DNA of 64,000 bases from Octopus bimaculoides (Eukaryota): the NCBI RefSeq assembly GCF_001194135.2, contig NC_069004.1, forward strand, positions 19,689,263 to 19,753,262. The letters run 5' to 3'. The first letter of the stretch is position 1. Every line of letters begins with the position of its first letter. Made by a program: the position numbers and the translations under genes. The notes under the pieces are model-generated. The model was given only the letters and a program-made list of their open reading frames with translations, was not told the origin of the DNA and did no database searches. Below are positions 2,975 through 56,234 of the stretch, one piece after another.

Positions 2975-4000
2975 TAAATATAAGGCTCTGTAATCATTTA
3001 GATTTTGAAGTGGCATATATTTAATGAGTGAGGGGCCAGAACTGTAACTTCTATGTTAGTTATCATTTTATCTGCCTGTGTGGCAACAAGCTTTTCTCCA
3101 CTATCTTAAAAAGTGCAATTACAATCATAACCCCAAACTTTGACATCAATATAAAGATCTGGTGGTCATAGCTTAACAGTGGCCTCAGCACTAAACTCTC
3201 ACCTATTGGATGCCTCACCTTTCACCTGTCCTCAGCACACCTTTCTAATACACAAACATTCAAAAATGAGTTACACCTCATATATACCAGTTATGGTATT
3301 ATTTTTTAATTATTGTTTAAGCACAGGCGTGGTTGTGTGGTTAAGAAGTTTGCTTCAAAACCACATGGTTTCGGGTTCAGTCCCACTGCATTGCACCTTG
3401 GTCAAGTGTCTTCTACTATATCTCTGGGTTGACCAAAACCTTGTGAGTGAATTTGGTATGTGGAAACTGAAGTGTATGTGTGTTTTGTTGTTTTGACATT
3501 GTGTAGTTATTGTAAATAAACATCATTCATTTCCAAACATGTCTGGCCATGGGGAAATATTAACTTACTTGGAAACAGTTATGGCAACAGGAATGGTATT
3601 TGACTGTAGAAAATCTGCCTTAACGAACTTTGTTCAACCCATGCAAGCATGGAAAAGTAGACATTAAAATAGTGATGATGTAATTTTTTATCTTCCCGTC
3701 AGTTTTTCTATTCTTGCATAAGTAAGTTACATGTTGGGTCAGTTGCCTTTACAGCTGCCATGCTCTTTCTACTATCAACCTACTCAGCTTTTTTAAAGTA
3801 GGTATTGAAAGAACTTTTTGATGTTTTAGGCCAAGCCATTCATCAAAGATAGAAAACAATTCTTTTTCCCCCTGCTACAGCTACCCATGTCTGTCAATAT
3901 TATTGTTATTGATAAAGAAATTTTCTATTCCCATGACTTGTCTATAATGATTTTATTTATGCCTCTCTCTCAAGAAGCGTTCATAAATTTTATTTTTCAG

Positions 4001-4079
4001 ATGTTTATTGATTACAATCTTTATGGTATGAATTTGCTGAATGTTAACCATGTCAAATTTCGGCGGCGCCAAACTAAAG
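4001..4079 (+). CDS. REV3L: REV3L exon, N-terminal domain (MFIDYNLYGMNLLNVNHVKFRRRQTK); phase 0 to 1
   Basis: Acceptor TATTTTTCAG and donor G|GTAAGC. The peptide matches the recalled human REV3L LFIDYNLYGMNLINLAAVKFRK. Confidence 0.95.
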
Positions 4080-5226
4080 GTAAGCTGAAACTTCATGTTC
4101 TGGTTTTGGAGTATAAACTTACATTGCAGGAAAGCTTCAGGACCTTTTGAACTCACAGTAACACATTCACCATCACAACCTGTTACTGGAAATTACCTGT
4201 GATGCCTCCAATTTCATGCACTATTGCTCTCAGTGCAATATTTCATAATTAAATTTAATATTTAGCACCATGTAATTTGATATTTAATATTTGTTAGTAC
4301 TCATGTTATTTAAATATCCTTGAAGCCATGTCAAAGACACAGAATAAAATATTTTCTCAAATTATGAAAATGTGTGCTGATGTCATGTAAAAGGCACCCA
4401 GTACACTACGTAAAGTGGTTGGCATTAGGAAGAGCATCCAGCCTGTAAAAACCAAGCCATAACATGACTGGAATCTGGTGCTGCTTGCCAGCTCTAACTA
4501 AACTGTCCAACCCATGCCAGCATGGAAAACGGACATTCAACGATGATGGGCCCCCTCCCCTGCTTGAACAACGAGTGAGAGTTGGGAGCAGCAGTAACAT
4601 CCAGTTGTAAAGTCCTGTTGCAGATATATCCCAGTCCAGTGCTGGCATCATTGAAAAATATTTAGGCAACAGAACTCAGCTGTGCAGTGTATATATGCTA
4701 TATCAATAAGACTACTGGAACAACTATAATAATACTAATGGTTTCAAATTTTGGCACAAGGCCAGCAATTTTAGTGAGAGGGAGCTAATTGATTACATCA
4801 ACCCCAGTGTTCAACTGGTATTTTATCAACCCCAAATGGATTAAAGACAAAGTCAACTGTGGCAGTATTTGAACTCAGGATATAACGATGGACGAAATGA
4901 TGCTAAGCATTTTGCCCAGTGTGCTAACGATTCTGCCAGCTCACTGCCTTAATAATAATAATGATTATCGTTTCTGCTATATGGGTGGGGCAAATTCAGT
5001 GACACTGACCCCAAAATAATGAAAGGCAAAGTAGACAGTGGAATTTGAACTCAGAAGACATGAAATACCACTAAGCATTTTGCTCAGCATGCTAACAATT
5101 CTGCTAGCTCATCACCTTAATAATAATAATAATAAACATTAATGGGAAAACTGAAAAATAAGTATCAACTCCTTTGGGAATATGATTGTATTTGTTTATG
5201 ATTACATTATAGTTTGTTCGTAATGT

Positions 5227-5261
<35 letters not shown>

Positions 5262-6309
5262 NNNNNNNNNNNNNNNNNNNNNNNNNNNNNNNNNNNNNNN
5301 NNNNNNNNNNNNNNNNNNNNNNNNNNNNNNNNNNNNNNNNNNNNNNNNNNNNNNNNNNNNNNNNNNNNNNNNNNNNNNNNNNNNNNNNNNNNNNNNNNNN
5401 NNNNNNNNNNNNNNNNNNNNNNNNNNNNNNNNNNNNNNNNNNNNNNNNNNNNNNNNNNNNNNNNNNNNNNNNNNNNNNNNNNNNNNNNNNNNNNNNNNNN
5501 NNNNNNNNNNNNNNNNNNNNNNNNNNNNNNNNNNNNNNNNNNNNNNNNNNNNNNNNNNNNNNNNNNNNNNNNNNNNNNNNNNNNNNNNNNNNNNNNNNNN
5601 NNNNNNNNNNNNNNNNNNNNNNNNNNNNNNNNNNNNNNNNNNNNNNNNNNNNNNNNNNNNNNNNNNNNNNNNNNNNNNNNNNNNNNNNNNNNNNNNNNNN
5701 NNNNNNNNNNNNNNNNNNNNNNNNCCCCACCACCACCACATACACTTGTTATCTTCCTATCTATGTTTCATTCTCATATTAAACTCCTGTTACTCTCATG
5801 CTTTACATAAGGACTTTCTATCTGTGCTATTCGGTTTTGTTTTTATAGCTTATAAGGAAGTATGATAAAAGTGCAGTAAGAGCGTTGGTGTCTTCTGCTT
5901 ACATTAGGGAAGCAGAAGTCAGCATATTGGGTGGAACTGAAACTGTTGTGGCTTTTAGGGAGAAGGAGAGAGACAGAAGGGGCAGGAGGAGGTATATAGC
6001 CAACAGATGAGCTAGTCATGTAAAGGTGCATGGCTTAGTGTTTAGGGTGCTCAGCTCACGATTGTAAGATTGTGAGTTTGATTCCTGGCAGTACGTTGTG
6101 TCCTGAACAAGACACTTTACTTCACGTTGCTCCACTCCACTCAGCTGACAAAAATGAACTGTACTTTGTCACATTTGGTGTGTCATGCTGAATCTCCCTG
6201 AGAACTACATTAAGGGTATGTGTTTCTGTGGAGTGTTCAGCCACTTCCACATTAATTTCATGGATCAACTGAAACACTCATTGTCATAACTGACCGAGTA
6301 AAAGTCTAT

Positions 6310-6889: not shown

Positions 6890-6987
6890 TGAAATGTTAT
6901 TAGATGAAGATCTTGAGAGAATGAGTACTTGTGAACTAGAGGTGGATATCGTAGCTGCTGATATATTGAATAGACTTGATGTTAATG
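6890..6987 (+). CDS. REV3L: REV3L exon (EMLLDEDLERMSTCELEVDIVAADILNRLDVN); phase 2 to 1
   Basis: Acceptor TTTTCCAG and donor G|GTAAGT. Matches the recalled human STCELEVDAVAADILNRLDI. Confidence 0.96.
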
Positions 6988-7556
6988 GTAAGTCAGATCA
7001 GTTTGCAGTTTACTACTACTACTTATCTGGAAATATTGTTGGTCTCTGTTGATCAAGCAAGCATATGATCAAAGCTGGTTCAACCATGGCCATCCTGTCT
7101 TATATTTTTAAGACATGATTTAGGACAATATTTATCCAATGAGAGAGATTTGGCTGTTATTTGTAGCCTGTTGTAGCAACCTCATAGATGTTCCTTTGTT
7201 GGCTTCATCTGAAAAATTAATTAGATTTTTTTTTTTTTTTAAATTCTTTTTTTTTAAATCTTGAAATTACATGATTATTGCATGATTAATTCAAAGCAGT
7301 GTGAATAAATAAGAATTACATTTGACAAAGTAATCTGAATGCTAAAGGGTTAAGCTGAAATGTCTACTGGATTATTGTTGACCTGGGGCTAAGCAATATC
7401 TTTCATCACTGTTTAGGGCTGATTACATGTGTACTGTTATTAGGATTATAAAGAATAGATTGTTTAGTGTTAATTACATAACAATGAGGGAAAGGTTGGG
7501 AATTGGTATTTTTAAAAATTTATTTATTTATTCATATATTGAAATATATATTTCAG

Positions 7557-7661
7557 ATAACATTGGTGTTAATCCAGGTTTAACTGCGCTGTGGAACGAT
7601 GAAAAAGAACGGCGGCGACTGAAAGGTTTATCTTCTCAGTGTGGGCTAAGTCAGTCCCAAG
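7557..7661 (+). CDS. REV3L: REV3L exon (NIGVNPGLTALWNDEKERRRLKGLSSQCGLSQSQ); phase 1 to 1
   Basis: Acceptor TTTCAG and donor G|GTAAGA. Matches the recalled human QIGGNPGLQAIWEDEKQRRR. Confidence 0.95.
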
Positions 7662-25650: not shown

Positions 25651-26205
25651 AATGTATCAACCCCAGTACTTATTTTTTAAAGCCTGGTACTTATTCTATC
25701 AATCTCTCTTACTGAACCACTAAGTTATGGAGGCATAAATTCCACCAGCACCAGTTGTCAAGCAGTGTGGCAGGGGACAAAGATGCACACACGCATAGAT
25801 GTATACATATATACAACGAGCTTCTTTCAGTTTTTATCTACCAAATTCACTCTCAACGCTTTGATCATCCCAAGACTATAGTAGAAGACACGTTCCCAAG
25901 ATATCACACAGTGGGACCGAACCCAGAACCATGTGGTTGGAAAGCAAGCTTCATACCACACAGCCAAGGAGATTGAGTTATTTTTCCTTCCCTATTTGGT
26001 TATTGTTTCTTACATAAAGGCTCCTTTGTTGCCTCAGAGTGATTACCATTGTGAAATCCCATTATCACTAACGTTGAGGTGTGCAACTGCTTCCAAAAGG
26101 GTTTTAAACTATTAGTATCTCCATTGCTGGTATTTTATTCTTTAATTCTTTAATTATGCACATGTATACATCTTTATTTATAAAATATCTCTTTTATCTT
26201 TACAG

Positions 26206-29200
26206 ATGAACAACCAAAGATCCGCAAACGAATGGGTCCTCGTGGCCCTGTAATCAGCTCTGCCAACAATCCCTCCCCAGTAAGTTCTGAGGGACAGGCT
26301 TCAAGTTTTTCGAATTATGGCCCTATTTTCCAAAATGACCCTGGATTCCTTGGCTCCGGTTCCAACATGCAGGCCTACCAAAGTCCAACAAATTATCAGG
26401 ATTATGATCGCCGATGGGATACTCATGCATTTCGTGAGGATATGTCCAGTGGTGTCCCTAGCGTCGATCAGCAATCATCTCACTGGAACCCTGCATGGTC
26501 ACGCTCTTTACACTCAGCACGTGCTGATCCTTCCAGTTACGCTGGGGCCGGTAATGTGCATGGTAACAATGGCAGCTACATGACAGAAGGCTTCTCCCGT
26601 CCATATGCCAATCAGCAACCCCAAAATCATCCCTCACAAGCTGCTACATTAAGTGAATCCAGCACTGATCAATACCCTGCTTCATTTCCTTATGACATGA
26701 CGAACATATATAGTCCGGATTCCTATTCACGCTCACGGACATCTGACAGTGGGCACACTTCAGATCCACACAACAGCCCCTTCGCTGGCCATTTATCCCC
26801 GTCCCCCGGTTATTCTCGTGATGGATTCGAATCAAGCCGATCTCCCGTTCCACTCTCTGGAAATGTCGGAATACAAGGATCAGGTAGTTCTATGTATAAC
26901 CAGACCCCTTCGTTGCCTCCTCCCGAGGAAAGCCAGGGTAGTTTCCACAAATTGTTAACTTGTAACGACAGCCCAAAGCAATCCATTCCAGCCGATCTTT
27001 CAACCCATCAGTCATTGCAGCGAAGTATCAGCCGATGCTCCACACATTCTAGTGAATCAATAAGTATGGGTGCCAGTACTACACCTGACCCTTTTAAGAG
27101 TCTTCCAAAACCTGTTTCTTCAGAAGATACTACAATGGAGACTTTTGAAAAGATGTCAAGCATAGAAAAGTTAGATGAGACAACCGAAGGTCGTTCGAGT
27201 GTTGATTCTTCAAATCATCCCCCATCGGAAACTGGAAATGCTTCACTGACTCCATTAGATGGTAGTAACTCACAAAAGAAACATATGTCCTCAATTAACA
27301 TAAGCCATGAAGATTTATTTGGAACCCCTTCTCTTAATTCTTGTGCTGATCTTTCCTCTGATTCTTTCACCTCTGCTGAAGGTAGCCGGCACCAGAGTGT
27401 TGTTGACCAATCAAATCAGGGCTCCTTCATTTCTTCAGGATACTCAAACAAGAATACGTCACACCCACAACGTTGTAGTTCTGTCACGAGTGAAGAAGAG
27501 GCACCCAGTTACCAGTCGCTGACTATGTCGTTCCCCGGTAACCAAAGCGGTAACCGCAGTCACTCGGCGATAGCCAGCCTGGAACAGATGGTGTCTAGTG
27601 TCGGAGGCTATGATATCGGTTATGACTATGCAGCTTTTCCGAACAGAGCATGGCAATGTGCTGGTACTCAACCATCTCACAATGTTACCCCTCTGCACAA
27701 CATATCTGCTGGTCCAACTATGCCCCCTGGTGGGAATTTGCCAGCCAACACCAGTATGCCATCTGGTACAAGTATGTCGACTGGTTCAAATATGCCTTCT
27801 GCTCCAAGCATATCATCTGGCCCAAACATGCCCCCCAATCAAACGTTAACGTCTGGACAGAATATGACGAGATCAAATATGCCTCCTGTTTCAAACATGA
27901 CATTAGGTTCAGGCATGCCCTCTGGATCAAACTTACACTCCGCTCCTAACATGACACCTGGACACAATATACAAAACCGTAACCTGTCATCTTCTGGACA
28001 CAATATGCCAGCAATATCACCTGGTCCTTCTCTCACTCCTACAAATATGCCCCCACATAGCATCCCTACTAACCACAATATGCCATCGAGGCCGAATGTC
28101 GCTCCTGTGAACATGTCTCAAAGCCAGCACGTGACTCAAGTGCGTGCTTTGACACCAAATATGTCAACGAGCCTTCATGGAGGTCACACTATGGGCCGGA
28201 GTGTCACTCCTCATGGGCATGGCCATGCAATGCACCCACAAGTCCACAACATATCTCAGGGTCACTCTGTTCATCCCTCTCACAACTTAGCCGCTGCACC
28301 TCAACTTCCGCCACCAGGTCACAGTCCAGCTACTTCTCCTCCCAGTGCTCATGGTCACAATATGTCCGGTCATAGCATATCTTCTGGTCATAACATGATG
28401 CAAACTCACAATCTTCCTCAGGGCCATCATGTTACACAGGGGCATGAAAGGTCCCACTCATACAACATATCTGAACCAAATTACACCACACAGGATGTCA
28501 TGATGCCTAAACAGGGCCGTATGGCTTTAAAAAAGAAGCGAGGTGAAGCGGATAACTGGTCATATGGTAAATCATATTATCAACAAGGTAGATCTTGGAA
28601 TCAGCACCCTGGACCTCCAGGTCAAAATTATAGGAACACCACTTATTGGAGGTATATGGATACTTACCAAACTTACCAAGGCTATGTTCAGAATCCCAAG
28701 GTGGAACCAGGAACTATTTCACAAACTCCAAAACTACAGCCTGTTCTGCCTCCTGGAGCACCACCTGAAAAGAGCAAGCGTGGAAGGAAAAGGTCTTCTT
28801 TTACTATGGCTAAATCTATGTCAGCTATGCCTGTGGATTCCCAACTATCGCAGTATACTTACACTTTCCATGTGCCAACCCCGATCTACAAACGGCTTAA
28901 ACTTCTCCAAAAATCAATGATTCCTGAAGAGAATGCTGTTTGCATTGTTCGCATGCACCCAATGGACGCTCGCCGCTATAGTTTGCTTAAAATTGGTCGA
29001 GAGCTGGTAAAGATTCCAAAGCTGGAGGAACGAGATATCAAAAGAATTCAGAAGGAAATTAAAGAGACAGGTTATTATCCTGGAGCGTGTTCACGTTTTG
29101 GTTATATGGTTCCATCTGATCAGCCAAGTATATCGACTAAAATTGGTTTATTGCCAGGTTTGTTGAATGAGCCAAAACCAGTTTCTTCTTATGAACCTGG

Positions 29201-32200
29201 TATTAAGTATGTTACAGTGGATAGGAAATTGCTTCCTATGAGTGCTAAAGGAATGGGTAAAAATGCTCCATCGGGATTTCAATTAGAATATGAACGAATG
29301 TTATCCCAGAATCCTCGGAACCGTGCAAGGTCTAACGTCAAGATTAAATTGACTAAAGCAAAAGAAAAACGTCGGCGAAGGAAAGTACGTGTGACTAACA
29401 GGAGGAAGGGCTCTTGTGATTTGCTGTCCGACTCTTCGTTATACACAGACTGCTCCCTTGTTTCTCAGTTACCTTACAACAAGAATTTACCCAGCACCAC
29501 TCCTCATAACCAGTATTTACTCCCATCCTCTGCATCAGAAATAACAAGTCATAGCAAGACTCCTGTGTTAATAGAAACTCTGCATTCGCCGCCTATAGCC
29601 AATATCCAGTCTTCCAATGCAACTGAAAACACGTTACCGCCTGTGAAAACCACGCATGTTAGGCGTTCGACTCGCCCGTTTCCCAAACACAATGTTGTGC
29701 CACCCCTCCCAGGAGCAAGACCTCGCATCATCACTGACAACAAGTACCGTAGTAGTAACAATAATAATTTTAATACACAAAATAGCCAGCTCCCTACCTC
29801 ACATGCAACAAATATCACTCCTCCAGTAAAACTGTGTCCAGGTCAATGCCCTGAGCAACCCACTAATCTGACTATGAGTCTCCCTCAACAAACTGCTGAT
29901 ACTACTTTTGACGCTCACCCCAAAATTGATAACATAACAGAACTTGAAGTCAGGCCAAGTTCCTCCAACAATTCTTCACCTAGTCCATTGAGTTCCTGTA
30001 AAGATAATCAGTCTCCTTTTCCAACTAACATTGGTTCACCTCATGATCCCCCACCAACATCTGGTTCATCCCTGTGGCAACCCAGTAATACACCAACTGG
30101 ACAAAGTTTCACTGTTAACTCTTCTATTCAATCCTCCTCAAACAGCCAAGATTCCCAGCAGGTGCGCAAGCGAAAACTGGGTTCTGATAACGGAAGCCAA
30201 GATGGTTCAAAACGCACCATGAATTTTTCCACAATGGATTTCACAGATATCTATGATCCTCACTCAGAGGGCTATGATGATGATGATGTTGACGCAGATG
30301 ACGATGACGATGGTGACGATGACGACGACGACGATGACAGCCATGATAACTTTGATCATAAAGCCTCTTCCGGAAATGTTTGTTGTCTTGTTGTCAACAA
30401 AAGAGCACACCAGAGGTCTCTAGTGGTGAAGTTGGAGAAGTTAAAGCTGCCAAGTAAAACGGTGAAGGCCAGTGAATTCCTTGCTACCCGTGATGGTATT
30501 CCACATCGTAGTTGTGTTGGTAACAAAATACCTGGCCGTGTTGAGAATATTGGATGGGAAAGAATTAAACTAGCTGATAAAAATAAATATCGTGGTGGAG
30601 TACCTCTAATGAGTTATTCAAGTCCAATAAGTGATGATAATGGACGTCTTTCTCTGTTCACTCAGCATTCTGGTAGCATGTTCTATGACCGACCAGCTAG
30701 TGACTATTTTCAAGATGAATATTTGGGAGTGGCTATTGCAGGATCTCTTGATGAGTCCAATGACACTGGTTTGCTTATGTCGATTGACGACGATGGCTAC
30801 TCCCAAATGATAAATACAGATTCTAGTTCAGGGGAAGATGCAACCATAAGCTACGAAGAAGAATTCGAAATAAAGTCCCGAGGCAAGAACAAACGTAAAA
30901 GAAACCTCACTCCTAACCAACGTCTAGGTGTTGCTTTCTTGACTACGAGGCATCGCAGAAAACGTGCAGTTGCAATGAACCATGGAAAACTGATGAACAG
31001 TTTGTCTTTGTTGCATCAAGCGACATTGGCTAAATTATCAACGCTCTCCACATACACAGATTCTTCTGATGATTTTAAGAAAACCTACAATGATGTTATG
31101 TCAAAGTTAGCATTATTTTCTCCTCCTGTTTCTGAAAAAGGTGATACATCTCCGCCCCAGCCACTATCCCCTGAAGAAAATGCACCTCTGCCAGTAGTTG
31201 ACGGGAATCCTGATGACGTCTCGCTCGATTCGACTGACGGCGTTTTGTCTCAGCCTAACTTCCTGTCTCAAACTTCTCTAGATTCGATCTACGAGACCCC
31301 TCTGTCTAGTGTAGAGACACAGCGCTCCTGTGAATCAGCCAAGTCCCCTAGTCTTACATCGTTGGGTGGTTCTGAAACAGAGCCAACCAGTGATATAATA
31401 GTACCAGTTGTGAAGCAAGATGAAGCTGCAGAAAACAAGTCTCCGCCCATTCCAACATTGTTGTCTTGGAAAAATGAAACTCCTACCGAGAAATCACCCT
31501 ATGCTGTAAAAACAGCTGTTGTGAAGCTCATTCCACGTGCAAGATCTGGTAGTAAATCTAAAGTTGATTGCAAACCTGAGAATAATAATAATGATTTGGA
31601 AGTTGCTGTTCCTCTTAACTCCACTATTCGAAATTTCTCCATCATTAATTCCAACCAACAAAAAGAATCAAGTGAAATTGAAGGTTTCCCTAATGTACAG
31701 TTTCGTATTGAATGCAAGCAAAAGGCATCTGTTGATCAACTAGAAACTTCTCAAGCTCATAGTAAGCTTGTAGTGAGCAATCAGTCATCAAATTGCACTG
31801 AAGATGAAATTAGTCGAGCTGAAGAACAAACTAATACTTCACCTGGTCCCTACCAGACTGGCATTTATTCACTTAATTGCCCAGAAGAAACCAGTAGTGA
31901 CAGATTAAATAGTTATTCCAATTGTGATGCAGCTGATACGGATGTAGGATATCTCATGGATAAAATAGACAACGAAGAAACACAAAATACTCTGATTGAA
32001 GAGAGAGAAACAGTATCAGAGGTTTGTCACAAAGACACAACTGAGAAGTCAGAAGTTGAGCTTAAAAATATTGCAAATAAGCTACCAGCTAGTCCTGGAA
32101 TTGAGTTGGGTGGGAATTTAGAGGAGACAGAGAAATCAACTGAACATCAAGTTTTGCAGACTACACAATTGATCTGTGAATTGAACAAAGAAACGGAAGA

Positions 32201-32917
32201 AACTACTGCAAAGCAGACAGGTGTTACATGTGACAGTGAAATGGTAGAATCTGCACAACGAAAGGAAACTGTGAAGAAAATATCCGAAACTGCAGATCAG
32301 GAAAATGGGGTTTCTAAAGCAGCTTCAGAATCAATTAAGAACACAACTGAGTCTCATTTGCATATTGGATCTCAAAATACCATTTGTGAAGAAGGTCCGC
32401 TCAATGATGTTAGTTCGCAAAAAGAGGTGAATGGTGGGCAATGTATCACCACTTCTAAGCAAGGAGAAATCAGTAGATCTGGTGAAGAAGTAGAACAGAG
32501 TAAGAAAGCATTAGCAGCTGAAGATGATGTCTTTAACTCCGACATAACAACATTGGATTTATCCGTGAGCCCTAAAACAGGTGTTTTACAATCAAGCAAA
32601 TCATCTGGAAATTCATCAAAAGAAAAGGAGTCGGCTGACACTAGTGAACCCAACCAGACTAACCAAGCAGCTCCAAAGAAATCTCAAAAAGTTAATGTGG
32701 GTAGCAATGAAAGTATAGGCTCTGAGAGACAGGACGATCACTTCAAAAATGCCAGTCCTCAGCCAGTCGCTGGCAAAGAGTCTCTGGTATTAACACCACG
32801 CGATCGTCCACCTAGCAAAGACTTAATCTGTCATACAGCAACAAAATATGGTCTCAGTATACCTAAGGTCACTGAACCTTTCTGTGGCAAACCTGAAGAC
32901 ATCACAGAAACACCCAG
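26206..32917 (+). CDS. REV3L: Giant REV3L insert exon (6712 nt, ~2237 codons), mostly low-complexity; phase 1 to 2, or reads through to a stop at 32939
   Basis: Acceptor CTTTACAG is in frame with the 2235-aa ORF. TYNDVMSKLALFS (31083-31121) resembles human YSDVMSKLGFLS. LVLTPRDRPPSK...EPFCGKPEDI resembles human ILKPLMSPPSR...EPFCSNPSDV. Candidate donor AG|GTATTA at 32918. Confidence 0.9.
32784..32816 (+). other. REV7 (MAD2L2)-binding motif RBM1 within REV3L (LVLTPRDRPPS)
   Basis: Fits hydrophobic-hydrophobic-x-P-x-x-x-P-P, at the same position before EPFC as human RBM1 (ILKPLMSPPS). Confidence 0.8.
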
Positions 32918-32939
32918 GTATTACAAACTATTGTTTTGA

Positions 32940-35865
32940 TATCATCTTGATCTTCTTTTAAAACTTTTTATCATTTTTTTTTCTGCCATTTCTGATCAAT
33001 CAGCATTAGGGTGACTGGTGGAGAATAATTTTGATTGGGATGTGAAAGCAGTTTATTTTATTTTATTTAAAACTTTTTTTTTTTAAACTCCTTTTCTTTC
33101 CAAAATTCTCTGACCAAGAAAAGAGCAGAAACACCCTTCTATAGTCCATGCCAGCTATTTTCTTTTAAATTGGTCCCTACACTTGGCACCAACAAACCAA
33201 ATGTGTATACTCTCTTTTGGGGCTTAACTGACATTGCTCATTGAAAGAAAGTCTGCCAGCTGATTCTAGAAGCTGATTGGATATTAGACAATCCCTCCAG
33301 ATCCCTTGGAGATATTCACACTTTATTGTCCAACCCATAACACACCACCCTCAGGCATCACAACTTATAATATTGCTACCCTCAGGCATCACAAACAGTT
33401 TATGATAATAGGTTTAGTTCAATTTCAAATGATTTAAAAAAAAAAAAAAGAGGAGACCCTTACACACCCATATGAAGCATTAATTATTACTCATACATAC
33501 ATCATACACACATAACATTTTTACTCCATACATACAGATGCATACCTCAAGCAATACAAAGTACAGTTTAGACAATACCTGGCAGACAGTCAGATACTTC
33601 TAACACTTTGTATTGTAATCATTGCATATTTTGTAGAAATGGTTCGCTTTTGATTCCCCGTTTGCAAACCATTTCATTTATGTCACCTATGCCTCAGGGA
33701 AAGGCATGAATATCACAAATTTCCCTTCCTCTATAAAATGAGGCTCCATGCCAGTGTCAAAGTTATTATTATGATTTCATTTAAAAAAGGATTTTTTTTT
33801 TTTGTCATTTTTCTCTGTTAGATCCTTCCAGAGATGTTTTTGTTCACTTTGGAAGTCATCTTGACCCTTACTTAATGGCTAGCTGCTTTCTTTGTCCCTT
33901 TGGAGAGGGTTTTGCTGTGTTGTTGTTTGCCCACCAGAAACAATGGATTCAGTTGACTTGTCTGTTTAAGCAGACTGCTGTTGTAGAAAGAAGGATCACC
34001 TTTGTAGAAATAGTAGTTTAGGGGTGTGGCACATGTCCTCCAGTCAGCTCAAAGTTGGTCGATAATGTACACTTTTGGGATATCTAGTATCTTTTTGCCT
34101 GCAAATATTGTGTGTGTGTGTATGCATGTATGTATCCCTCTGTCTATCCATCTATGTGTATATATATATATATATCATCTATATATATATATGTATGTGT
34201 GTAGGAGAAATTACGATAAACACAAGTTTATATCATTTGTTCCCCTGTACATTTTACACTTGTGGTTGTTTGGAACCCCTGCATTTGATGTTCCAGTTGC
34301 AGTTGAATGCTCAATCACAACAGCTCATCGAGGGAACACTTTATTGCATCATGTTTCAGAGAGCTAAAGTCACGCGTGCGCGTTTGTGTATGTGCATATA
34401 TATATTATATATATGTATATATAAAATGTCTGATATTTGGCACAATTTAGGTAGCTATCTTATGTATGTATATATAATATGTATATAATCTGGCCATACC
34501 CTGACTGTGAGTGGTGAAGAATATATATATATATATAGTATTTTGAAGACTCAGTTGTTTCATAGGTATGTGGTTGTGTTCCTGTTTTTCTTTCTCTGTA
34601 AAAGACAGATACTTTGTTATAAAAACAAGCCTTTGCTATAAGGGTCAAGTTGAAAATTTCTCTCTCTCTCTCTCTCTCTCTCTTCGCGTACTACATTCTA
34701 GATGATTATGGGATTAGTTGTGACTCAATCGAATGGATTATTTTTCATGGATATCTCTCTTAGCTTGTTTGTTATGTATGTGCGAGTATTTTTTTGGTTT
34801 GCTTGATGTGAACATGCCTCATTCTGTCAAAGTATTTCTCTCCATCTCTCACAATCTTTTTAATTTTAAAAAAAAACATTTTTTTTTTCTTCCTATCGCT
34901 ATCTTCATTATTCTTCTGCCTCATTGAAATGGCCAAAGTGTTCTGTGAAACTAGGAAAAAAAATAAAAAGCCAAAAAGAAAAAAAAAACAACAAAAAAAC
35001 AAACAAACAAACAAAAATATGGAAAGAAATAAAGCGAGAAAAACAAAAAAAAAGATATGAAACAAACAAACAAACAAACAAACAAATAATTCCTCATCAC
35101 AAAGACGAAAAGAAAATGAATTGAAAGAACAAAATAAAACAAAGAAACCAAGCAACATTGAAACTTCCAAACTGTATCCATTGTTTTTCATCCGATAGAT
35201 TGGCCTATTTATTTGTTTACCAGTCACTCTCCTTGACTCAAATTTCAAAAACTAAACCCTCAGCCCTGAAACCTTTTTTTTTTTTTTTTTTTTTTTTTCC
35301 CCCTCCCCCCATTTCTGTTGAAAATTTGTCTGTCATTATGTACCTGTCTTGTCAATCTCTCTTTGGTCATTAAACTTGTTTTTCCCCCCTCCCCTCCTCC
35401 TCCACCACTCGTCTACCTATTTGGACAAATTATTAACTGGTCTGTTCCTTCTTGCCCCATCCCACACTCTGCTCCCCCACTCCCCTTACATCACAGATAA
35501 TCAGGCTGCACAACTATTCGATATATCAATACATTAAGCTTTTTTTTTTTCTTCCCCTATTGACAAGAGGATAAAAAAAAATGAAAACCCAACTAAACAA
35601 ATAAAGAGACATTTCAAAAAACAAAATTCAAACAAGAACCCTTTCTGTGAAGCCCATAGCGCCATGGATTGTCTTCATCAATATGGTATAACATATATAT
35701 ATATATATATGAATTTATGAATATATGAATATATATATAGTTTCTTCCTTCCCATTCTCATCATTATCACTACTACAATAGAGCTCTTCCCCCCATCTAA
35801 TCTTTCTTTCTGTGTCACTATACCTCTCTGCATTACCCATTCCTAACAATGCACAACATTTTTAT

Positions 35866-35898
<33 letters not shown>

Positions 35899-36230
35899 AG
35901 GCTTAAACATAGATACATACACATGCATGCGCACACGCACGCACACACACACACAAGTGTTGTGAAGAGAGATAAGGTGTGTGTGTGTGTGTGTGTGTGT
36001 TAAAGGAACACCCAACCCCCAACAAGAACCATATTTCATGTGTCAATGCATTGTGAAAGTTGGACTATAAACATCTGTATTTGAAGATGTCAGAGTTTTT
36101 TCTCTCTCTCCCCCTTTCCCCTCCTCCCCCTTACCCCCTCGATCTTGAAACACTTTACAAAAGCATTGAAGGAGAAAGAAAAAAAAAGTCATAATTAAAA
36201 CGTTTAAATAAAAACCAAACATCATCTTAT
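32940..36230 (+). other. Putative 3' UTR of a short REV3L transcript
   Basis: Follows the in-frame TGA. No SINE copy was recognised over ~3.3 kb, in contrast to the flanking introns. Ends near AATAAA at 36207. Confidence 0.5.
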
Positions 36231-36250
36231 TTTTTGTGCGTATGTTATTA
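36207..36250 (+). promoter_or_regulatory. Candidate polyadenylation signal with U/GU-rich downstream element
   Basis: AATAAA at 36207-36212, followed ~17 nt later by TTTTTTGTGCGTATGTTATTATGTC. A second AATAAA lies at 35600-35605. Confidence 0.45.
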
Positions 36251-38620
36251 TGTCAGAGTGCATGTGTGTGTATGTGCACACATATATATATACGTATATA
36301 TATTCACATGCACGCATATGTGTGCATATTTTGTGTGTGTCTATTTGCAATTGTGTAGTTGTAGTCCATTGATTGTTAACATACCTCTTTACACATTTCA
36401 GATTCGTGGATTTTTCATCTAATGTTGATATAAGATTTTAAAGTGTGTGTGTGTATGTATGTTAGTACATGTGTGTTTTTACTTCTGTGGTCATTTATTG
36501 TTTCGTTTGGGACTTGTCTCCTTTCTATAACTTCTACCCCATAAGAAAATGTTTTGCTTTTTCTTTATCCCCCCTGTACTTTCTCAGCACTAGACATTTT
36601 ACTGGCAACACGTTTAGACACGACTCGTCCTTAGTGGAGCAGACCTGTGACCAGTCCAGCATTCCAGTTGTGACTTTCACATCTTTTTAGACGTATCTAG
36701 GACTACATCACCTGATATATCCTTTCCTTGTTTTATTAACGTAATAAGGATGACTTTGAGGGAGGTTTGACTGCTATGTTAGACAATTTCAGGACAACTG
36801 TGTTGAGGCTCCCTCATTGCTTTTAGATTTATCAGGTAAGGAAACTTGGTCACTTATGGTGTGAAATGGTTCCCTTTCTGTAAAGTGAAGCTTAGCAACC
36901 AGTAGTTGTACATCAATTTATCTTCTTCTAAAGAGTATTGGAGCCAAAGAAGTCACCTTGCTAAAAATAAGCAGTAAGTTCTCATAAATCATAGCCTGCC
37001 ATCTTTAATATAAAAATAACACATTTGATTAGTCATTTATACTCTTAAAAAGATGATGTGACAGTTACAATTAGCATGTTATTGATCATAGACCTGTTTG
37101 TTCCAAATTGACCGGGGGTTAAAGAACACCAAAATACTTTATCCTTTGCATTGTAATGATAATCTTAAAAAATATAGTTGGTTATGTTTAAAGGAGAAAT
37201 TCCATAAGCTGTCCTGTGCTGCACCACATACCAAACTCTCTCATATCCACCTTGTCTGCCTCTGGACCACAAAGGTTTCTTTGGTTTTAATTTTTGGGGT
37301 GGTTTCTGAAGAAAGCTAGTTTCATGGCAGTAAGTTCCCAGCTCAAGCTTAAGCCTTCTCTTTTACTGGGTGTGGGAACCAACTGAGATTCTCATTTAAA
37401 GGATAATAACCAAAGAGAGAACAACCAATACTGAGAGGGAGAATTGATGTTAGTACTTGAATACTTTTAGTTTATCGACCTTAGAAAGATGAAAGGCACA
37501 GAGTGACCTTGGCCGTAATTGAACTCAGATCACAGACCCAGAACCAGTGTCACGTGGTATTTGTCCAGTGTTCTTATGATTCTGCTAGTTCACCAGGCAA
37601 GCTCTTGGCAGAAGCATCATCTTCACCATCAAAATTTCTATGTTTGGGTTTTCCATGCTGGCATGTGTTGGACGAATCTCATTGAGGTAGTATTTTATGA
37701 TCAAATATCCTTCCTGGTGCCAACTTTTGTTTTCAGGTAAGGTGCTTTTTATTTCACATCTTTGCAATGCTGATGAAGGGATTAAAATCTCTGTTAGTTG
37801 AAAAACCGGTAAGGGTTAGCTAACAGAAAGGGAATCCAGATTGTAAACAATATTTCAATATGTGTTCACTGTTCCCCGTAAAATGCATCCAGTCGAACAC
37901 TGGAGAGGGCATCCAGCTGTAAAAATCCAAACCAAAACTGACCTTACCTGTGCTGGTCCCACATAAAAAGCACTTGGTCCACTGTTGAGTGGTTGATGTT
38001 AGGAAGATCATCCAGCCGTAAATACCCTGCCAAAACAGACGCAGTAGCCTGGGGTAGTCTTCCACCTGGTTAGCTCTTGTCAGACTGTCCAACCCATGCC
38101 TGCATGGAAGGCAGACGTTAAACAGTTATGATGATGATGATGATTCAGCTAACCCATGCTAGTAAGGGAAACTCAATGTCAGCCAAGTGAGTATGTCTGT
38201 AGTGGAACTGTTCAGTTATACAAAATAGTGTTTGTGTCTCACCCAAAGAAAAAGTCTGGCAAATCATCAGCAGTTGTGGAATCATAGAATTCTAGGTACA
38301 CAAATGCCTAAGAAAAAAAAAAAATGGCTAGTCAGGGTTGGCCTCAGAAAGAATAACTAACACACCACCACCATGTGCTTTGGCCTGGATTACATCAAAA
38401 TGCTTTCGGTGAATTTCATCTCAATGAACAATCGAAGTAGTGTTCAGTTGGCATTATCATCATCACTTTTACTGTCTACCTTTTATGCTTGCATGGGTGA
38501 GATGAGTCTTTTTAAGGCAGATTTTCCACTGGCTAGTTGCTCTTCTTGATGTGCAAATAGTTGTGATAATAACCCCACATGCTTTCATGAATGTCTATTA
38601 ACAAAGGACACTGTTAACAT

Positions 38621-54895: not shown

Positions 54896-56234
54896 AGAGC
54901 CAGAAAAAATTGCCACTAGCTATTTTGTGCAATGGGCTAATGATTCTGCCAGTTGGTTGCCTTAATGCTTTCAAATTCTGCACAAGGCCAGCAGTTTTAA
55001 AGGATAAAGGCAAGTTCATTACTTTAACCCCTTTTCCTAACCAATAATTATTTTATTGACCTTAAAAGAATGAAAAGTGAAGCTAAACTCGGAACGTAAA
55101 AGAGACAGAAGAAATGCTGCCAAGCATTTTGTCTGGCACGGAAAAGATTATACCAGTCTTAATACCTGGTTTTACTCCAGGAGCAGATAACTTTTTACTC
55201 ACCTGAACTGACATTGAATCTTCTGATAAGAGATCAAAGCAGTAAAACACACTGAAGCTCAGATTTTGCTTTGTGAAGCTTTGTTGTTATTGTTATTAGT
55301 AGTGGTGTTTAACCCCAGTCCAGTTCTGGTCAAACAAATCTATGATCAGCTGCATTCCAGTAATCTTTTATCTTTTACTTGTTTCAGTCATTAGCCTAGG
55401 GCTCTGCCTTGAAGAATTTTTAGTTGAATGAATCGACCCAGTATTTTTTTTTTCCTTTAAGCCTCATACTTATTCTATCAGTCACTTTTGCTGAACTGTT
55501 AAGTTACAGGGATATAAACACACCAACACTGGTTATCAAATGGTGGTGGGGGATAAACACACACGCACACACATAATGGGCTGCTTTCAGTTTCTGTTTG
55601 CCCAAGGCTATGGTAGAAAATATTTGCCCAAGGTGCTGCGCAATGGAACTGAACCCAGAACCACATGGTTGGGAAGCAAACTTTTTACCACACAGCCAAA
55701 CTTGGTCATTTTTTTGTATAGCCACAACTGCTTCTATATCTGCAAATGGTAAGGTTTGATTTGACATTTGGCTGCTATTTTTAGCAAGTTAAGTAATCAC
55801 AAAGAGACCCATGTAATAGCTAAAAATCTATATTAGTTGTTACTGTTTATACCCTGGTTAACTCCTTCCATGCAGACTTTTGGTCNNNNNNNNNNNNNNN
55901 NNNNNNNNNNNNNNNNNNNNNNNNNNNNNNNNNNNNNNNNNNNNNNNNNNNNNNNNNNNNNNNNNNNNNNNNNNNNNNNNNNNNNTTATATCTACATATA
56001 CTTGGACTGTTTGGTGTTGGCTGCTATTCTTCAGAACACTGTGCTCTGTAACATACCGTAAAGTGCATGCTTGCTGTTTTGTAGGGAACATGGGGGAAGA
56101 ATCTTGAGGCTTCAGTGTAACTTGGTGAGCTGTTCTACTTTATATCTTTATTCCTTGCTTCATAACCATGCACGTAGAAGTTTGAATTGTTTACTTGATA
56201 ACAACACCCTGCTTCTCTCATTTCATATTATATA

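Follow-up and report, generated by a model that had tools for sequence, protein, structure and literature searches.

The stop codon behind the giant exon of octopus REV3L very probably belongs to a 23-kb intron leading to polymerase exons downstream

Intronic polyadenylation occurs in long introns whose 5' splice site is weak, where premature cleavage is normally suppressed by the U1 small nuclear ribonucleoprotein (snRNP), and detained introns, which are usually short, are found unspliced in poly(A)+ RNA. Among the ultra-long exons, exon 13 of human REV3L, the gene for the Pol zeta (DNA polymerase zeta) catalytic subunit, has a length of 4161 nucleotides (nt) and needs RBMX for its correct processing (bioRxiv 10.1101/2020.10.09.333039). 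In this study, the REV3L locus of Octopus bimaculoides was analysed in a stretch of 64,000 nt (hereafter the window). For this stretch it had originally been predicted that a giant REV3L exon passes its splice donor and runs into a stop codon, a 3' untranslated region (UTR) and a poly(A) signal, so that the gene would lack its polymerase domain or be split. An animal that lacked catalytic Pol zeta would be remarkable, since mammals cannot do without this polymerase activity, as the title of one paper states (PMC4699697); this is not the case here. Our analysis indicates, with high probability, that a 23-kb intron starts directly behind the giant exon and includes the stop and the putative UTR, and that the octopus REV3L gene is complete, with its polymerase exons located past the window.

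When the C-terminal 1193 residues of the giant exon served as the query of an exhaustive HMMER search, they retrieved a protein of 2925 amino acids (aa), P0007, which is the current RefSeq model XP_052832126.1 of O. bimaculoides. The two are 100% identical over residues 1146-2338, and after ...ETPR the protein continues with EHGGRILRLQCNL IKDLTPF.... The residues that follow the giant exon are encoded within the window by a 40-nt coding exon at 56085-56124 of the + strand, identical to P0007 residues 2339-2352, wherein the G at 56085 completes the split Arg codon (AG|G) and the bases 56086-56124 encode EHGGRILRLQCNL. This exon is bordered by the acceptor tgttttgtAG|G and the donor TTG|GTGAGC, and its phase continues exactly from position 32917. 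Therefore, the stretch past the donor is, in the annotated model, an intron of 23,167 nt (32918-56084, + strand), including a 100-N gap at 55886-55985, as delimited by mapping of P0007 and of the Octopus sinensis REV3L protein (XP_029650343.2, P0016, 4068 aa). The counterpart of the 40-nt exon in O. sinensis is EHGGRNLRLQCNL (residues 2806-2818), and the junction there reads ...ETPREHGGRNLRLQ, or in a longer excerpt ...ETPREHGGRNLRLQCNLIKDL.

The rest of the gene was followed in two fetched loci, L001 and L002, which are base-for-base identical to the window in the overlaps (chromosome CM046624.1, assembly GCA_001194135.2); positions above 64000 carry the numbering of the window on into the downstream locus L002 (window coordinate = L001 coordinate - 3107 = L002 coordinate + 11288). 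After the 40-nt exon comes an intron of 28 kb, and the next P0007 exon, with 1146 nt at 84398-85543 (L002 73110-74255, + strand), contains a second REV7-binding-type motif, VWVPCLPPP. The same exon also holds a long Ser/Pro-rich stretch of low complexity. The exonuclease part of P0007 maps to + strand exons at 89649-89768, 90937-91236 and 91988-92149, and the 2925-aa gene accordingly matches PF03104 (DNA_pol_B_exo1) with its exons at 89.6-92.1 kb. The gene that follows P0007 in the same orientation, at a distance of 3.1 kb, encodes a 685-aa protein (P0015, XP_052832491.1), in which DNA_pol_B was found with an E value of 4.3e-104 (profile positions 2-451 of 453) and zf-C4pol with an E value of 2.3e-14. 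These polymerase and zinc-finger exons start from about 96 kb in the continued numbering, on the + strand, and polymerase motif A, VVVLDFQSLYPSIMIAYNYCFSTCLG, lies at L002 87994-88239. Exonuclease, polymerase and zinc-finger exons are thus located on the same strand and chromosome as the giant exon, 52-70 kb past its donor. In the O. sinensis protein, POL3_N, REV3_N, exonuclease, polB and zinc-finger domains are all present, and its mapping is collinear throughout the region, with a gene range of about 200 kb in O. sinensis; it is solely in this model that all parts are seen joined in one mRNA. In addition, tblastn with an approximate human REV3L C-terminus, which served as a lead only, gave up to 69.5% identity at the downstream locus and no match within the window.

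No exonuclease or polB exons are present between 33 and 64 kb, as had been predicted, because the introns in question are 23 and 28 kb long; the 40-nt coding exon in the same interval had been overlooked. The apparent truncation of REV3L is a product of the 64-kb window and of this easily missed exon. A REV3L truly devoid of a polymerase domain, or physically separated from it, is almost certainly not what this locus holds: the empty interval of 33-64 kb is the single observation in its favour, and the downstream exonuclease, DNA_pol_B (with motif A) and zf-C4pol exons, on the same strand and collinear with the 4068-aa O. sinensis protein, contradict both the polymerase-less and the split gene. 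At the level of the genome, polymerase exons do follow beyond 64 kb, and nothing counts against the REV3L gene being complete.

One REV3L gene is represented by four gene models in O. bimaculoides, of 205 (REV3_N/POL3_N), 133, 2925 and 685 aa, which together span window positions 1-64000 plus L002 52713-90864, and by one model in O. sinensis. Between P0007 and P0015 there is a gap of 774 N (93581-94354; L002 82293-83066), and 28 residues of the O. sinensis protein (3383-3410) match neither side of it; the gap and the unmatched residues are probably the reason why REV3L is fragmented in the annotation. Meanwhile, the cluster of P0007 also includes a 2345-aa protein (P0018) which starts with MLASQGEKL... 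and ends with ...ETPRYYKLLF. It corresponds to XP_014783418.1 and to UniProt A0A0L8G7B5, both named 'uncharacterized protein LOC106878651', and its length follows from the splice-site count (2338 complete codons, the split Arg and six read-through residues). This model has been superseded by XP_052832126.1, which splices at 32917. The truncated product proposed in the original prediction is, in other words, this older gene model. A literature search on the identifiers of the locus returned no paper mentioning them, and none was found that describes a REV3L isoform ending after the large exon or such an intronic-polyadenylation isoform.

The giant exon itself occupies 26206-32917 of the + strand (6712 nt, about 2237 codons) between the acceptor ctttacAG|AT and the donor CCCAG|GTATTA, within an open frame that spans 26184-32939. 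Its translation shows 100% identity to residues 102-2339 of XP_052832126.1 and 96.8% identity to residues 581-2805 of O. sinensis REV3L. The C-terminal part reads ...LVLTPRDRPPSKDLICHTATKYGLSIPKVTEPFCGKPEDITETPR, and the final codon is split (AG|). Shortly before the exon end, VLTPRDRPP at 32787-32813 (+ strand), followed by the conserved EPFCGKPEDITETPR, matches the pattern phi-phi-x-P-x-x-x-P-P, so that the predicted presence of a REV7-binding-type motif before the exon end was borne out. Both VLTPRDRPP and the VWVPCLPPP of the later exon fit the published REV7-binding consensus phi-phi-x-P-x-x-x-p-P (PMC4333420), as predicted motifs only. The first motif is kept in Sepia (VVLRPRDNPP) and in five of five open reading frames (ORFs) from other taxa that reach the exon end, and the exon boundary ...PR| is common to the ORFs from five other taxa.

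Pfam and PDB searches with the giant exon and with its last 100 aa gave no usable match; with the whole exon, no Pfam family reached E <= 0.01. It had been suggested that the insert is akin to NEXMIF and AHDC1. A match to PF15735 (DUF4683; REV3L insert/NEXMIF/AHDC1) does exist for a 551-aa segment (E 0.0016), at profile positions 332-410 only, but its 18.7 bits remain below the gathering cut-off of 27. Since an ORF from another taxon (P0011), alignable to the same octopus segment, passes this cut-off, a distant homology of the octopus insert to the DUF4683 segment is likely, as judged from these profile scores. The large REV3L insertion is termed 'vertebrate-specific' in a recent abstract (PMC13408197); despite this label, octopus (6.7 kb) and cuttlefish possess a still larger single exon in the same place.

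In the unspliced reading, the frame passes the donor as AG|G TAT TAC AAA CTA TTG TTT TGA, giving RYYKLLF* (32918-32939, + strand), with the TGA stop at 32937-32939, 22 nt into the intron. This agrees with the original prediction; however, a frame that enters an AT-rich intron commonly meets a stop within so few codons (seven here), and this is no more than would be expected by chance. The donor GTATTA deviates from the consensus in lacking A at +4 and G at +5, suggesting that it is weak. The argument is a soft one, because G at +5 is also absent from other donors of the gene (GTAATT, GTAATG and GTTTGT). A U12-type intron was considered for the GTAT... start and was rejected. The U12 consensus consists of the donor /GTATCCTT and the branch site TCCTTAAC near the acceptor, whereas the donor here is GTATTACA and no TCCTTAAC was found upstream of the acceptor at 56084.

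Pairwise and MAFFT alignments of Octopus and Sepia revealed a conserved intron start at 32918-33014 (+ strand). The first 24 intron bases (GTATTACAAACTATTGTTTTGAT...), which comprise GTATTA and 18 nt more, do not differ between the two genera (24/24), while the four-fold degenerate sites of the giant exon are only 37% identical, which corresponds to saturation; at the synonymous rate, such an identity would have a P of about 5e-11. A second conserved patch, CCATTTCTGATCAATCAGCATTAGGGTGA, is located at about 32986-33014 and ends in GGGTGA. The similarity reaches about +97, and none was detected beyond this point within the 541 nt of Sepia intron. Of the conservation of stop and UTR that had been proposed as a check in other cephalopods, RYYKLLF* is kept in Sepia, but past about +97 the similarity does not extend further into the putative UTR over the stretch that the Sepia sequence covers. 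Homologous donors in two other taxa are CCCAG|GTAAGT and GCCAG|GTAGGG (L004 6440-6520 and L005 1850-1930, which are Logan contigs of genomic type, with unspliced neighbouring introns). GTAAGT and GTAGGG place a stop directly after the Arg codon, and among the donors read, six extra codons occur only with the cephalopod GTATTA. What is conserved is the nucleotide sequence, and bases behind the stop codon are included; this appears more in line with an RNA element controlling the donor than with selection for a tail of seven residues. The end of the second patch resembles a donor (window 33003-33016; L003 about 4680-4695), the sequence being AGG|GTGACT in Octopus while Sepia has GGG|GTGAGC. Such a site may act as a decoy or be spliced unproductively; if used, it would lengthen the exon by about 100 nt containing the in-frame stop. 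In addition, a weak AU-rich hairpin, GGUAUUACAAAC UAUU GUUUUGAUAUC, is predicted at 32916-32945 in both species (-7.85 kcal/mol) and encloses the donor GU; covariation is uninformative for it, as the two sequences are identical there.

The Sepia sequence comes from RNA. The only other cephalopod match to the end of the giant exon was a 1300-aa ORF (P0008), 54-56% identical and ending in ...DPFCGRPEDITDTPRYYKLLF, which is encoded on Logan contigs of 5.0-5.1 kb from each of seven samples. One of the seven contigs was read (L003, run SRR19578101), and according to the four papers citing this run, it is a transcriptome run of Sepia esculenta. In one of these papers, RNA-seq of S. esculenta juveniles is described for which mRNA was purified on poly-T oligo beads (PMC9538352). 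The contig starts inside the giant exon and runs unbroken across the homologous donor, and its ORF ends in ...DTPRYYKLLF*; at least 541 nt of intron follow, ending in a microsatellite and not in a poly(A) end. Read-through RNA is thus present in poly(A)+ material of Sepia. From the behaviour of de Bruijn assemblers, we infer that the read-through reads were plentiful enough for the assembly not to fork at the donor. As neither a second intron position nor a poly(A) end lies on the contig, it is compatible both with an intronic-polyadenylation isoform and with a slowly spliced pre-mRNA. For octopus, no contig came up when the read-through ORF and two small ORFs of the putative UTR were looked up as exact products.

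Past the donor, the intron also stands out by its lack of repeats. Repeats were measured by self-BLAST of 105 kb (the window together with L001 and L002), in which 36% of the bases other than N fall in interspersed repeats and the median length of the repeat-free runs is 178 nt. The zone 32918-37466 (+ strand, 4549 nt) contains only microsatellites and A-rich tracts. It is the largest repeat-free intronic run (the next has 2216 nt; random-placement P about 5e-5) and has no long counterpart without repeats among some 85 kb of intronic sequence, and it extends past the region for which the absence of interspersed repeats had been predicted. With the BLAST settings relaxed, matches elsewhere cover 7% of the zone and are nearly all microsatellite, compared with 29-73% in five control intron stretches. 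At the acceptor side of the 23-kb intron, the closest repeat is no more than 240 nt away from the exon. Microsatellites apart, the zone has a single similarity to the rest of the 105 kb: positions 36637-36777 are 71.5% identical over 144 nt to 91368-91504 in another REV3L intron, and this may be an old repeat copy. The A-rich tracts of the putative UTR include an A14 run at 33446-33460 and (AAAC)n / (AAAAAAAC)n at 34957-35086; intronic tracts of this kind could give internal oligo-dT priming or capture and hence false poly(A) sites.

The poly(A)-signal-like site that had been noted in the zone is present at 36194-36290 (+ strand). It consists of AATAAA at 36207-36212, an additional ATTAAA at 36194 and a T/GT-rich tract at about 36230-36290, and the two hexamers are the final AATAAA/ATTAAA pair in the repeat-free zone. 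Hexamers with a GU-rich downstream tract occur at three sites on the + strand of the window, including this one. The frequency of AATAAA in 32940-36250 is unexceptional (five, or 1.5 per kb, versus 1.0-1.2 per kb in other introns). The repeat-free zone is the best argument that selection acts on more than the splice site, since a splicing element of 100 nt would leave 4.5 kb without repeats unexplained.

In the reading that we favour, splicing would join 32917 to the 40-nt exon at 56085-56124, and the path would then cross the 28-kb intron to the exon with the second REV7-binding-type motif, to the exonuclease exons and lastly to those of the polymerase and the zinc finger. Any unspliced reading gives the in-frame stop that lies 22 nt inside the intron, and the older truncated model was built on it. 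The RefSeq junction from 32917 to 56085 is itself an annotation model. Three points sit uneasily with a plain intron at this place: the poly(A)+ contigs of Sepia run through the donor, the intron start is conserved between Octopus and Sepia, and the zone after the donor is free of repeats. The last two features may reflect RNA-level control of a weak donor after an ultra-long exon, and some transcripts may stay unspliced there. One way to read them, tentative and on balance somewhat improbable, is that the read-through RNA is unproductive, i.e., a slowly spliced, detained or decay-targeted pre-mRNA, and that the conserved block is a splicing control element that sets the level of REV3L, with no functional short protein being made. 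Candidate elements would be a U-rich enhancer for the weak 5' splice site, or the decoy donor AGG|GTGACT (about 33011). This would agree with a conservation that spans the donor, the stop, U-rich sequence and the second patch, which in Sepia is a good donor (GGG|GTGAGC), and with the predicted hairpin around the donor, two identical sequences precluding covariation. Ultra-long exons, including human REV3L exon 13, reportedly also depend on special factors (RBMX) to be processed correctly (bioRxiv 10.1101/2020.10.09.333039). However, unproductive RNA leaves unexplained why freedom from repeats extends over 4.5 kb and not over about 100 nt, and the unbroken poly(A)+ assembly, as far as assembler behaviour tells, suggests that read-through reads are not rare.

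The same observations could also come from an extra polyadenylated transcript of cephalopods that exists beside full-length REV3L and is compatible with the favoured splicing path. In this case GTATTA would be skipped, translation would stop at RYYKLLF*, and cleavage would take place in the repeat-free 4.5 kb, e.g., after the AATAAA at 36207. This would yield some 2,350-2,800 aa of protein devoid of catalytic function, in which the N-terminal part is kept together with the insert and the first REV7-binding motif. We regard such an isoform as unlikely. Seven Logan contigs carry the homologous ORF, and the poly(A)-selected Sepia contig is unbroken at the donor; yet this contig begins in the exon and shows no poly(A) end, so that unspliced pre-mRNA would look the same, and the A-rich tracts at 33446-33460 and 34957-35086 could allow oligo-dT capture of pre-mRNA. 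At GTATTA and the 18 nt behind it, Octopus and Sepia do not differ, in spite of saturation at synonymous sites; however, nucleotide conservation past the stop seems a better fit to an RNA element than to a coding tail, and the similarity ends about 100 nt into the intron. The 4.5 kb past the donor are uniquely free of repeats, in comparison with repeats within 240 nt on the acceptor side, and 36194/36207 is among only three hexamer sites flanked by GU-rich sequence on the + strand of the window. The 2345-aa product appears in two annotation sources, the original annotation in UniProt and an earlier RefSeq, but these truncated models may only reflect the missed 40-nt exon 23 kb away, and look-ups of the octopus read-through ORF and of the small ORFs of the zone gave no match. 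Thus, of the additional non-catalytic product that had been proposed, there are hints in the Sepia contigs, the intron conservation and the repeat-free zone, while the octopus contig look-ups were empty. A conserved, possibly regulated read-through at the donor is left as a residual hypothesis with indirect support. In its strongest form, a regulated choice would have existed at the end of the giant exon since the octopus-cuttlefish split: either splicing, leading to full-length polymerase zeta, or read-through and polyadenylation within the repeat-free 3-4.5 kb, leading to a polymerase-less protein that ends in RYYKLLF, retains one REV7-binding motif besides the disordered insert and the N-terminal region, and could compete for REV7. 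We consider this proposal speculative and improbable.

Upstream of the giant exon, a composite of three short exons gave a 100% match to the 133-aa 'DNA polymerase zeta catalytic subunit [Octopus bimaculoides]'. These N-terminal REV3L exons are located on the + strand at 4001-4079, 6890-6988 and 7557-7661. The phases of the first two are incompatible; therefore, at least one exon is missing between them, possibly in the N gap at 5262-5724, one of eight runs of N within the window. The gene just upstream (205 aa) matches PF24065 and PF24055, so that the N-terminal domain is also accounted for. An Rfam scan of the window found no RNA families.

What remains of interest at this locus is the donor. 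It is embedded in sequence unchanged between octopus and cuttlefish, cuttlefish poly(A)+ RNA runs across it, and behind it lies the sole long stretch of the gene's introns without repeats. If a regulated short isoform exists, it would represent a new control of Pol zeta or of REV7 availability; if the block is a splicing element alone, it would be instructive for the handling of ultra-long exons.

Generally, octopus REV3L resembles vertebrate REV3L (3130 aa in human) in its N-terminal domain exons followed by one ultra-long, mostly disordered exon, in the putative REV7-binding motif and the subsequent ...PFC..P.D.P..PR at the exon end, and in the second REV7-binding-type motif of a later exon followed by C-terminal exonuclease, polB and C4 zinc-finger domains. 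The human exon, too, presumably ends exactly at ...PR. However, the octopus exon is larger (6712 nt versus 4161 nt for human exon 13), the gene extends over roughly 200 kb in O. sinensis and has introns of 23 and 28 kb in O. bimaculoides, the donor is GTATTA instead of the consensus, and the DUF4683 match is sub-threshold. Compared with detained or retained introns in poly(A)+ RNA, Sepia shows a similar unspliced intron start, and the splice-adjacent intron is conserved, whereas the octopus intron measures 23 kb. With intronic polyadenylation, the octopus locus shares a weak donor, a very long intron and an AATAAA with a GU-rich site 3.3 kb downstream, and read-through, seen here in an assembled cuttlefish RNA contig that stops short of a poly(A) end, would likewise yield a C-terminally truncated protein.

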